A stretch of DNA of 23,598 nt. It comes from Salpingoeca rosetta (lineage: Eukaryota > Protista > Choanoflagellata). Below, piece after piece: positions 1-9,175 of the stretch; the stretch's first letter is position 1; the number at the start of each line of letters is the position of its first letter. The notes beneath the pieces are model-generated. The model saw nothing but the letters and a program-made list of their open reading frames with translations, searched no databases and was not told the DNA's origin. The position numbers and the translations under genes were made by a program. Where the stretch lies: the NCBI GenBank assembly GCA_033442325.1, contig JAWQFM010000027.1, positions 643,154 to 666,751 of the forward strand, given 5' to 3'.

Positions 1-2107
1 TGTGGACGTGGAGATGGGACAGTGGGTTGTCTGAGCAGGCTGAGAGGTGCATGTAATACAGCAACACACACTCTAACACCCACTAACACACGCACACACA
101 ACACATTCAATCACTGACTTGGCAGCAGCGCCAACAGCGGCAACGACAACACCAGCGTCACGTTTGCAGCAGCAGGCGAGGTATGCCATGAGTTTCAGTG
201 GGCGGGCCGTCGCACCATCAAGCCGTGGCTGTCGTCACAGCACGCCGTCCCTTGGGCTGCATGGCAGTGCATCGCAAAGTGAGCAAGCAGCAGAGCGGGA
301 GAGAATGAGATGAGGGTTAATTGCCGCAGTAGCATCGTCGCTGCTGATGGTGGTGTTGGCATTGCTGCTGCCGTCACACGCTGCACAGTCTCTCTTTGAG
401 TGCAGTCATTTCGCTGTAGCACCTCCATAACACTCACAAGGACACTTGTGCGGCCTCCAGTGCATATACCCTTTGTCAACTCAACCACCCCTCCCCTCAC
501 ACACACACACACACACACTCACTCACTCACACACACACACACACACACTCACTCACTCACTCACTCACTCACTCACTCACTCACTCACTCACTCACTCAC
601 TCACACACACACACTCTCTCTCTCTCTCTCACACACACACACACACACACCGCACTGCCAATGCCAGTTAAACGCCCCCGCCTCATCTTTCTCCGCTTGC
701 ATGAGCCAATGGCAACGGGGGACCCGGCGCTGGGCCACACACCTCATGTTTGATGGTGGTTTGTTTCGATCCGTCGCGCGCACCTCCGATGGCTGGTGGT
801 CAGCTCGCCGACGCCTGCGCCCGTCGAGTTGAGAGTTGAGAGTTCAGAGAATGCTGTCCGTGAGAGGTGTGCATGCGTTGGCTGTCGGTGTGGACCAGGG
901 CATGTGTTGGAGACGTGAAGTATAACGGTGTGGTGAGATACATGGAGGAAAAGGGGGAGCAAGAACAAGCATGGGGTTGTGTGTCTTTGTCCACATGACA
1001 ACAACAACCACACACACACACACACACACACACACACACACACACACACACACACACACGCACACACACACACACACACACACACACACACACACACACA
1101 CACACACACACACAGCGAATAAATGCGCACACAAGTGGAGCAAGGAAGAACCCCTCTTGCCTGCATGCACGCACGCACGCACTCAACCCAGTCAAGCATC
1201 CAAACAGGGCGGCACAAGAACGCACGTGGAGGAAAAAAAAAAGGGAGGGTGAGTCTGTACCTCTTGCCTGCAAGCAAGCACACCCGAGGCAACTCCTCAC
1301 AAGCAACTCACTTCTTATGTTTATGTGACGAGACAGCTGTATCGCATGAAGTCTTGAAGTCGCATCACCCGCCAAGGGTTTACTTGTGTCTTGCTGCGTG
1401 GTGGTGGTGTGTTGTGGTGATCCTGCCCGCGTATGTGCACTGTGATGGCACGCACACACTTTCTTCCGTTGTGCCGAGTGTTTGAGAGTGAGAGGCCAAA
1501 AAAACGCAAACAGCACACTTGGAGCAGTGTGCGTGCACAAGCAGAGAAGAAGAGAAGCAGCAAAAAAAAACAAAAAAAAAAGAATAGAACAGTGACTCAG
1601 CCGGGATTTGAACCCGGGCCTCCCGCGCACTGAAGCGCTCTTGGTTAAGCGCTTGGGAGAAATTGGCAGGCGGAAATTGTACCCCTCAACTACTGAGTCG
1701 CGCTCTTGTTGTAAGTTCGGTGGAAAATCTGCATATCAAAAATTGTTCACTCTCTCGCAAGCCAAGTTGGAGGAAGGAAAACATCAAGCCAAGCAACAGC
1801 AAAACGCACACAAGAAAACAAGCAGCAGAGCCGCTTCTTCCCTTCTTCCCTTCCTCCCTTACGTCCCAGCAGCAGTCTCACCAACACACAACACACAAGA
1901 ACACAGAGACATCCACTGTCCGCAACGTCTGCAAACGTCTCTCTGCAACAGCCAAGAAGTCCTAAACAGCAGAGCAGAGCCGAGGAAGAGGGAATCCAGG
2001 AACCCGTCCCTCTCCTGCCTCTTCTGCTTCTCCTGCTTTCTTCTAAACTCAACAAGCAGAAGCACTGCTAGCACTGCAGCCAACAGAAGAACGGAGCTGA
2101 CAGGCCA
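1..2107. repeat. Left arm of a long inverted repeat; the outer end probably lies outside the window
   Basis: Reverse complement of 7108-9175 wherever compared by eye. 1-15 TGTGGACGTGGAGAT matches 9161-9175 ATCTCCACGTCCGCA with one mismatch. The inner end GAGCTGACAGGCCA (to 2107) matches TGGCCTGTCAGCTC (from 7108). The ORF track shows mirrored peptides (1608+ vs 7621-, 1663+ vs 7566-). Confidence 0.97.
1593..1699 (-). tRNA. tRNA-Gly(GCC) with 36-nt intron, copy 1
   Basis: Exact reverse complement of 7530-7636. A downstream oligo-T Pol III terminator appears as A-runs at about 1562-1581 on the + strand. Confidence 0.88.
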
Positions 2108-2360
2108 CGTCATGATCCCACGATCACTTTGTCTCATGCTCGCAGCAGTTTATTCGTTTCGTGTTCAACACAACAGTCAATCACAGAAGAACGCACGTCC
2201 ACAGCAAGTAACAACACGTGACGGCCGTGGAACGAACTGAAGAACTGCAATTCAAGCTCACAGAGAGGTAAACTGAAACACAAGATGGTGCCACAACAAA
2301 AAAAAAAAAATGAACGGTCCCACTTGCCCCATCGAACAAACCCTTTGAACTTGGGCAACG

Positions 2361-2499
2361 CAACAACAACAACAACAACAACAACAACAACAACAACAAC
2401 AACAACAACAACAACAACAACAACAACAACAACAACAACAACAACAACAACAACAACAACAACAACAACAACAACAACAACAACAACAACAACAACAAC
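2361..2499. repeat. (CAA)n microsatellite downstream of the kinase stop
   Basis: Pure CAA array seen directly. Confidence 0.98.
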
Positions 2500-7017: not shown

Positions 7018-7107
7018 GTAGACAGCCCTTCGTCTCCTTCACGCACACCGCAGAGGAAGAGGCGAGTGAGTGAGAGTGGGTGTTTGGGCTGTGGCTGTTG
7101 GGTGGGT

Positions 7108-9175
7108 TGGCCTGTCAGCTCTTCTGTTAGTCTGTTAGTCTGTTGGCTGCAGTGCTAGCAGTGCTTCTGCTTGTTGACTTTAGAAGAAAAAAGCAGGAGA
7201 GGCAGAAGAGGCAGGAGAGGGACGGGTTCCTGGGTTCCCTCTTCCTCGGCTCTGCTCTGCTGTTTAGGACTTCTTGGCTGTTGCAGAGAGACGTTTGCAG
7301 ACGTTGCGGACAGTGGATGTCTCTGTGTTCTTGTGTGTTGTGTGTTGGTGAGACTGCTGCTGGGACGCAAGGGAGGAAGGGAAGAAGGGAAGAAGCGGCT
7401 CTGCTGCTTGTTTTCTTGTGTGCGTTTTGCTGTTGCTTGGCTTGATGTTTTCCTTCCTCCAACTTGGCTTGCGAGAGAGTGAACAATTTTTGATATGCAG
7501 ATTTTCCACCGAACTTACAACAAGAGCGCGACTCAGTAGTTGAGGGGTACAATTTCCGCCTGCCAATTTCTCCCAAGCGCTTAACCAAGAGCGCTTCAGT
7601 GCGCGGGAGGCCCGGGTTCAAATCCCGGCTGAGTCACTGTTCTATTCTTTTTTTTTTGTTTTTTTTTGCTGCTTCTTCTCTGCTTGTGCACGCACACTGC
7701 TCCAAGTGTGCTGTTTGCGTTTTTTTGGCCTCTCACTCTCAAACACTCGGCACAACGGAAGAAAGTGCGTGCGTGCCATCACAATGCACATATGCGGGCA
7801 GGATCACAACAACACACCACCACCACGCAGCAAGACACAAGTAAACCCTTGGCGGGTGATGCGACTTCAAGACTTCATGCGATACAGCTGTCTCGTCACA
7901 TGAACATAAGAAGTGAGTTGCTTGTGAGGAGTTGCCTCGGGTGTGCTTGCTTGCAGGCAAGAAGTACAGACTCACCCTCCCTTTTTTTTTTTCCTCCACG
8001 TGCGTTCTTGTGCCGCCCTGTTTGGATGCTTGGCTGGGTTGAGTGCGTGCGTGCGTGCATGCAGGCAAGAGGGGTTCTTCCTTGCTCCACTTGTGTGCGC
8101 ATTTATTCGCTGTGTGCGTGTGTGTGCGTGTGTGTGTGTGTGTGTGCGTGTGTGGTTGTTGTTGTCATGTGGACAAAGACACACAACCCCGTGCTTGTTC
8201 TTGTTCTCCCTTTTCCTCCATGTATCCCACCACACCGTTATACTTCACGTCTCCAACACATGCCCTGGTCCACACCGACAGCCAACGCATGCACACCTCT
8301 CACGGACAGCATTCTCTGAACTCTCAACTCTCAACTCGACGGGCGCAGGTGTGTGGGATGGAGTGTCGGCGAGCTGACCACCAGCCATCGGAGGTGCGCG
8401 CGACGGATCGAAACAAACCACCATCAAACATGAGGTGTGTGGCCCAGCGCCGGGTCCCCCGTTGCCATTGGCTCATGCAAGCGGAGAAAGATGAGGCGGG
8501 GACGTTTAACTGGCATTGGCAGTGCGGTGTGTGTGAGTGAGTGAGTGAGTGAGTGAGTGAGTGAGTGAGTGAGTGAGTGAGAGTGTGTGTGTGTGAGTGA
8601 GTGAGTGAGTGAGTGAGTGAGTGAGTGAGTGTGTGTGTGTGTGTGTGTGTGTGTGTGTGTGTGAGCGTGTGTGTGTGTGTGAGGGGAGGGGTGGTTGAGT
8701 TGACAAAGGGTATATGCACTGGAGGCCGCACAAGTGTCCTTGTGAGTGTTATGGAGGTGCTACAGCGAAATGACTGCACTCAAAGAGAGACTGTGCAGCC
8801 TGTGACGGCAGCAGCAATGCCAACACCACCATCAGCAGCGACAATGCTGCTGCGGCAATTAACCCTCATCTCATTCTCTCCCGCTCTGCTGCTTGCTCAC
8901 TTTGCGATGCACTGCCATGCAGCCCAAGGGACGGCGCGCTGTGACGACAGCCACGGCTTGATGGTGCGACGGGCCGCCTACTGAAACTCATGGCATACCT
9001 CGGCTGCTGCTGCAAACGTGACGCTGGTGTTGTCGTTGCCGCTGTTGGCGCTGCTGCCAAGTCAGTGATTGAATGTGTTGTGTGTGCGTGTGTTAGTGGG
9101 TGTGGTGAGTATTGCTGTATTACATACACCTCTCAGCCTGCTCAGACAACCCACTGTCCCATCTCCACGTCCGCA
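7108..9175. repeat. Right arm of the long inverted repeat; may extend beyond 9175
   Basis: Reverse complement of 1-2107 with scattered substitutions, different microsatellite lengths and an insertion of about 14 nt near 8351-8364. Confidence 0.97.
7530..7636 (+). tRNA. tRNA-Gly(GCC) with 36-nt intron (7566-7601), copy 2
   Basis: Cloverleaf: acceptor GACTCAG/CTGAGTC plus discriminator A; D-stem GTTG/CAAT; anticodon stem TCCGC/GCGGG with loop CT-GCC-A^C; T-arm CCGGG-TTCAAAT-CCCGG. Spliced length is 71 nt. The intron sits at the canonical 37/38 position with a C32:G anticodon-intron pair (G7599). Oligo-T follows from about 7648. Confidence 0.9.

Follow-up and report, generated by a model that had tools for sequence, protein, structure and literature searches.

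The stretch analysed here (the window) comprises 23,598 bp of the choanoflagellate Salpingoeca rosetta, corresponding to positions 643154–666751 of the scaffold contig JAWQFM010000027.1 (hereafter C27), and contains a leucine-rich repeat (LRR) receptor kinase gene enclosed by two long inverted arms. Two inverted pairs were detected by blastn comparison of the window with itself, namely 1071–2103 versus 8154–7124 (97.3% identity over 1037 nt) and 4–1052 versus 9172–8111 (94.7% identity over 1065 nt), both with E = 0, in agreement with an earlier sequence-only reading that had described inverted arms of at least 2.1 kb. The same reading placed the gene in an interval of 5000 bp (2108–7107); the gene-holding interval was confirmed, but its limits were corrected to 2107–7108 (5002 bp), because the exact inner ends of the arms lie at 2106 and 7109 in a three-way MAFFT alignment that includes a third copy of the arm sequence. 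The arms differ by ∼2.7% substitutions plus indels, and the differences cited previously were all found, i.e. the example substitutions (46 versus 9123 and 173 versus 8999, reverse complement), the 14-nt indel (left 815/right 8349), and unequal microsatellite lengths. As the window begins directly after a scaffold gap of 9,489 N (∼9.5 kb), 2.1 kb is a lower bound and not the length of the arms. The three copies of the duplicated sequence are referred to below as copy A (inverted, left of the gene), copy B (right of the gene), and copy C (direct, 142 kb away). The features of the locus are as follows (window positions unless C27 is given):

4–2106, no strand: left arm, the inner end of copy A, adjoining the 9.5-kb gap at the window start (blastn, MAFFT)
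1592–1699, minus strand: tRNA-Gly(GCC) of the left arm with a 36-nt intron, with 100% identity to its counterparts in B and C (Rfam, ARAGORN -i)
2107–7108, no strand: spacer of 5002 bp (three-way alignment)
2618–7017, minus strand: gene for P0001, an LRR-transmembrane (TM)-kinase annotated as 'TKL protein kinase', 1317 aa (annotation, Pfam)
2879–2990, no strand: (CA)n tract annotated as an intron, at the site of ∼140 missing codons (D of HRD, DFG, APE)
5967–7108, minus strand: 5' part of the gene (the N-terminal region before the LRRs), 94–100% identical to paralog C2 at C27:791026–792172
7109–9172, no strand: right arm, the inner end of copy B, immediately upstream of the gene (blastn, MAFFT)
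7530–7637, plus strand: tRNA-Gly(GCC) of the right arm with a 36-nt intron, ∼510 bp upstream of the kinase start codon (Rfam, ARAGORN)
9173–20157, no strand: continuation of copy B, in mirror order relative to C27:622537–630540, with 88–99% identity
20071–20145, plus strand: tRNA-Asn(GTT), whose terminator T-run contains the outer end of copy B ∼12 bp downstream
C27:622175–622482, 792575–792682, and 811606–811912: matches to tRNA-Gly(GCC) outside the window

The single long minus-strand open reading frame (ORF) of the spacer is 100% identical to the annotated P0001 of S. rosetta, and this is the only annotated gene between the arms, as had been proposed. The distance between gene and arm is 92 bp on the start-codon side (right arm) and 511 bp on the stop-codon side (left arm). 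P0001 matched LRR_8 in six stretches (E = 1.4e-42) and PK_Tyr_Ser-Thr (E = 9e-19) in Pfam, and direct reading identified a hydrophobic stretch (VVAIAAGSVIGGLFILVPVVAWLY) between the LRRs and the kinase domain; P0001 is predicted to have the LRR-TM-kinase architecture of an LRR array, one TM segment, and a kinase domain. No TIR domain was present among the Pfam hits of P0001, and none is on record for its paralogs P0002 and P0003. The Pfam match of the kinase spans only positions 2–128 of the 258-position profile (the N-terminal half). When aligned with P0002, P0001 can be followed up to the catalytic loop, where HRD is replaced by HRS; the alignment picks up again at subdomain XI, and the counterparts of P0002 residues 1143–1283 (∼140 residues, which include DFG, the activation segment, and APE) are missing. 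P0001 does not possess the HRD, DFG, and APE set of a catalytically competent kinase, and the enclosed kinase is, judged from its predicted sequence, decaying. In sequencing runs guessed to be RNA, 0.59–0.92 of the gene-body words but fewer of the flank words were recovered, suggesting that the gene is still transcribed. The single 'RNA?' contig that matches the arm carries variants of copy C, not of copy B.

The gene also has a composite structure. The high identity to C2 in its 5' part falls abruptly to 36–60% below 5967 (C27:649120 versus C27:791026), and this switch falls where the N-terminal region gives way to the LRR array. The P0001 gene is a chimera, produced by either a duplication breakpoint or gene conversion. 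The last exon and 3' end (2618–2974) match the 3' end (C27:786705–787051) of another paralog, C1 (C27:782549–787051, plus strand), at 91% identity in inverted orientation, a further sign of mosaic exchange in the cluster.

The region of C27 from 580 to 840 kb was compared with itself, by which the homology could be traced past the window. The inverted homology between copies B (650262–663310) and A (645256–622537) consists of nine collinear blocks with 88–99% identity. Seven of these lie beyond the arms described above (B 654748–663310 versus A 630540–622537; 88–99% identity) and are arranged in mirror order. The overall palindrome thus extends over C27 621.9–645.3 kb on one side and, inverted, 650.3–663.3 kb on the other, giving arms of at least 13 kb. 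Approximately 7.4 kb of the 13-kb span could be aligned between A and B, mostly with 93–99% identity (88–90% in the outermost ∼0.5 kb), and most of the B stretches without a partner face assembly gaps or gap-adjacent sequence in A. The public record GL832989.1 (GCA_000188695.1), on which P0001 is annotated, is identical to the window with the gaps included, which shows that the N runs represent gaps already present in the public scaffold.

Copy C (C27:791026–812157) is direct to B and inverted to A, and is located immediately upstream of the LRR-kinase paralog C2 (788195–791797, minus strand). The 94–100% identity between B and C persists across the arm/gene junction and ends only after 1.15 kb of coding sequence; copy C therefore includes the first 1.15 kb of the gene, and it has no inverted partner. 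This unbroken homology indicates that the right junction is ancestral, whereas the left junction (2106/2107) is a novel breakpoint, and that the arm is the gene's own upstream block. The 254 bp of the spacer beside the left junction (2107–2360) are unique in the genome and are followed by a (CAA)n tract (2361–2499). All copies hold tRNA-Gly, tRNA-Asn, and annotated orphan genes, and copy C also contains the 5' exon region of the kinase gene. A 1.3-kb stretch of copy C (C27:794348–795656) is absent from B, and a 3.5-kb stretch (797560–801027) has no partner in A or B; these are either copy-specific insertions or sequences hidden in the gaps of the other copies.

The homology of copy B stops in the terminator T-run of tRNA-Asn, whereas A and C run on for 620 bp, so that the outer ends of the copies are unequal. 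A comparison of the sequence on the spacer side of the left junction with that following tRNA-Asn revealed no target-site duplication (TSD); the two share only the 4-nt ACGT, which is regarded as a chance match. Genome searches with two parts of the arm (100–480 and 1100–2103) returned the same three places only, all on C27 and within 190 kb, and one of the three lies beside another LRR-kinase paralog (C2). None of ten arm ORFs had a significant Pfam match, and no transposase or recombinase domain was detected among them, as the sequence-only reading had stated; the annotated genes of the arms likewise have no Pfam hit on record. Approximately 2.7 kb of the arm (window 11900–14760) is also found at C19:913598–916325 (91% identity) and C31:499974–501828 (93%) and contains no Pfam domain; this segment could be an uncharacterised repeat element or a further segmental duplication. 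Hundreds of matches to 14392–14535, 14842–14972, and 12771–12844 were considered as possible transposon copies and rejected, as they are imperfect CA/CAGA microsatellites.

A six-frame search of the genome identified at least 35 LRR-kinase paralogs, of which 17 map to C27; six are clustered in C27 595–792 kb. With three arm copies against at least 35 family members, the arms are not a vehicle that accompanies the family. A second palindrome was found at C27:766453–773320; its arms, 98–99% identical, measure at least 2.3 kb, and its spacer ∼2.1 kb. One of the arm ORFs of this palindrome (C27:766579–767577, minus strand) resembles, by eye, the C-terminal part of a Ty1/copia reverse transcriptase.

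The arms had been described as tRNA-bearing, and each was found to contain a tRNA-Gly(GCC) gene. Both genes were detected with Rfam (RF00005; 51.6 bits, gathering threshold 29) at 1593–1699 (minus) and 7530–7636 (plus). ARAGORN identified them as tRNA-Gly(GCC) with a 36-nt intron at the canonical position 37/38 when introns were allowed (the glycine assignment is from the anticodon) and missed both under its default settings. Their acceptor stem (GACUCAG/CUGAGUC) is unlike the usual Gly stem. Every copy (A, B, and C) has tRNA-Gly(GCC) ∼420 bp from its inner end and tRNA-Asn(GTT) at its outer end, and the extra 620 bp found beyond tRNA-Asn in A and C only carries two further tRNA-Gly genes. In total, seven genomic matches to the intron-bearing tRNA-Gly(GCC) were identified, all within blocks A, B, and C on C27; four are identical, one shows 98% identity, and two show 83–86% identity with a 37-nt intron. 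A pattern search of the genome found no intron-less tRNA-Gly(GCC), and near T-arm matches on scaffold C12 were rejected because they belong to tRNA-Pro(AGG). The duplication breakpoints adjoin Pol III genes: the outer end of B lies in the T-run of tRNA-Asn (20146–20160), and the inner end is the one located ∼420 bp from tRNA-Gly.

In the inner 2.1 kb, the substitution divergence is 2.7% between A and B, 2.1% between A and C, and 1.2% between B and C, and the differing sites are clustered in runs. The numbers of sites at which one copy differs from the other two in the three-way alignment are as follows:

Inner 2.1 kb: A 36, B 19, C 6
Middle block: A 1, B 2, C 13
Outermost 0.5 kb: A 9, B 21, C 4

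The odd-one-out copy thus shifts along the unit from A to C and then to B, and it also shifts within the inner 2.1 kb, while A and B reach 99.2% identity in the middle block. This mosaic points to repeated, patchy gene conversion that would have involved all three copies.

Whether such a locus exists in the genome can be judged from the contig structure and from independently assembled reads. Both arms and the spacer lie in a single gap-free contig (C27 643154–654302). Logan contigs were aligned to window 1130–2360, which covers the left of the two junctions. DNA runs of three studies yielded a contig over 2058–2360 that bridges 2106/2107 with no differences, and one DNA run yielded an A-specific arm contig (1595–2087), also with no differences; in the remaining contigs, loose ends and variant letters could be assigned to copy B, copy C, and the outer tRNA pairs. 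The presence of the novel junction and of A-specific variants in independent runs means that the arms are not one set of reads placed twice, and the argument made to that effect from the sequence was borne out. Two haplotypes, which had been retained as a possible source of the two arms, do not account for three distinct sequence versions. It is therefore highly unlikely that a single upstream region or two haplotypes were assembled artificially as an inverted pair: although the left arm adjoins the 9.5-kb gap, copy A is riddled with gaps, and the assembly is an older draft scaffold, the gap-free contig, the independently built contigs, and the three versions, impossible to obtain from two haplotypes, all speak against such an artefact.

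The locus is very probably a large inverted segmental duplication, i.e. a palindrome with a 5-kb spacer, in the main LRR receptor-kinase gene cluster of S. rosetta, which is of the birth-and-death type. The copies have the length (at least 1 kb), identity (at least 90%, apart from the outermost ∼0.5 kb), and low copy number of segmental duplications, consist of ordinary host sequence (genes and tRNAs) rather than a transposon body, and are both physically in the genome, as seen at the junction 2106/2107 and from the A-specific variants. The relic of an inverted segmental duplication was one of three explanations offered previously, and it is supported here on a larger scale (arms of at least 13 kb and a third copy, C). 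The duplicated block, of ∼13–20 kb, is the upstream neighbourhood of an LRR-kinase gene, starting 92 bp upstream of the start codon and containing, in order, tRNA-Gly(GCC), several orphan predicted genes, and tRNA-Asn; two of the copies continue with another pair of tRNA-Gly genes. Copy A is an inverted extra upstream block located 511 bp past the stop codon of P0001, and the apparent cassette is thus one gene caught between its original upstream block and the inverted extra copy. The copies may have arisen by duplication with breakpoints beside tRNA genes, through replication-linked template switching or ectopic repair, and may later have exchanged patches by gene conversion. The palindrome itself would serve no dedicated function. 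Its presence probably entails additional tRNA-Gly genes, a second copy of the upstream region that points into the 3' end of the gene, and local instability.

Several points weigh against this explanation. Copy A is mostly tied to the window only through scaffold gaps (the 9,489 N and others), so that scaffolding and the mirror-order collinearity of separate contigs are the basis for the extent of at least 13 kb. Approximately 2.5 kb of non-gap sequence in A (C27 630541–633664) and ∼2 kb in B (652329–654302) have no partner, which can be reconciled with the palindrome only if gap sizes are wrong or copy-specific insertions have occurred. In addition, the mechanism and order of the duplications are deduced from a single assembly.

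Non-allelic homologous recombination can act on inverted repeats of at least 2 kb that are 95–99% identical and surround a 5-kb spacer, and the arms fit this description. The spacer could have been inverted by recombination between them, either once in evolution (the weak form) or recurrently as a receptor switch (the strong form), and the ends of the copies are indeed reciprocal: A is long and C-like outside and short and divergent inside, whereas B shows the converse. One crossover between the arms would yield this pattern, and the 99.2% identity of A and B in the middle of the arms implies some arm-to-arm exchange. However, the outlier copy changes at least three times along the unit and also within the inner 2.1 kb, and the single-crossover model was not adopted for this reason; gene conversion fits the data equally well, and a model without inversion requires the same number of events. 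Inversion of either form is thus considered unlikely. The strong form corresponds to the flip-flop locus proposed earlier, which gained no positive support: switching inverted repeats are kept near-identical, whereas ∼2.7% substitutions plus indels between the S. rosetta arms speak against frequent exchange, the inner part of the right arm differs less from the distant copy C (1.2%) than from its partner A, and the ten arm ORFs yielded no recombinase domain. The arms are thus not the near-identical repeats of a programmed invertible segment, and these ORFs did not reveal the nearby recombinase of such a segment. It is correspondingly improbable that the palindrome has been inverted at least once and is perhaps still orientation-polymorphic, with the extra upstream copy possibly driving antisense transcription of the receptor gene; if true, this would amount to a recombination-based reshuffling or silencing of members of a choanoflagellate receptor cluster.

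The other explanation offered previously, a non-autonomous foldback/Pack-MULE-like transposon whose terminal inverted repeats spread LRR-kinase genes, is barely credible. Such elements resemble the locus in that long inverted arms flank one host gene; another copy of the arm adjoins the LRR-kinase paralog C2, and the segment at window 11900–14760 is present at 91–93% identity on two other scaffolds. However, the three arm copies found with the two arm parts, all on C27, are few relative to the family of at least 35 members, and copy C lacks an inverted partner. The arms, at least 13 kb long, asymmetric, and containing tRNA and predicted genes, continue in two copies directly into the 5' region of the gene itself. 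Equivalent or conserved termini, a TSD, dispersed copies, and, in the ten arm ORFs, a transposase domain or relative, as would mark a foldback or Pack-MULE element, were all lacking.

As an inverted segmental duplication, the locus can be compared with known structures of this type, such as the ampliconic palindromes of mammalian X and Y chromosomes and the inverted repeats that mediate polymorphic inversions. It resembles mammalian palindromes in having kilobase-scale arms of host sequence with genes, a gene-sized unique spacer, a location in a multigene-family region, and signs of patchy gene conversion from arm to arm and from copy to copy. Unlike mammalian palindromes, whose arms are >99.9% identical, the S. 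rosetta arms show ∼88–99% identity (mostly 95–97%) and thus give no indication of sustained homogenisation; tRNA genes border the unit, and the host is a unicellular choanoflagellate. In plants, LRR-RLK and NLR genes form birth-and-death clusters of LRR receptor genes, and the S. rosetta cluster is similar to these in its clustered paralogs, local duplications in both orientations, one chimeric gene, and one decayed member. The S. rosetta genes, however, encode choanoflagellate TKL-type kinases, no orthology is implied, and the likeness concerns gene organisation and not an immune role. The 'Kinase TLRs' of choanoflagellates have an LRR-TM-kinase-TIR architecture, in which TIR follows the kinase toward the C terminus (Richter et al. 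2018, PMC6040629). P0001 shares with them an LRR ectodomain, a single TM segment, an intracellular kinase, and a choanoflagellate host, but with no TIR domain in Pfam and a truncated kinase, it is not a Kinase TLR. A search for papers on S. rosetta with LRR/TKL or segmental duplication found none that describes the locus.

The idea of a mobile or switchable cassette for an immune-like receptor in a close relative of animals is unsupported, and the locus adds a new example to a known type of structure and is not a new system. What it documents is an LRR-kinase family in S. rosetta whose evolution is shaped by local duplication (direct and inverted), partial gene conversion, and decay. The location of rearrangement ends beside tRNA genes and the confinement of all detected tRNA-Gly(GCC) genes to the three duplicated blocks may be worth more than the palindrome itself, and the locus provides useful background for studies of receptor diversification in choanoflagellates and for re-assembly of the genome.

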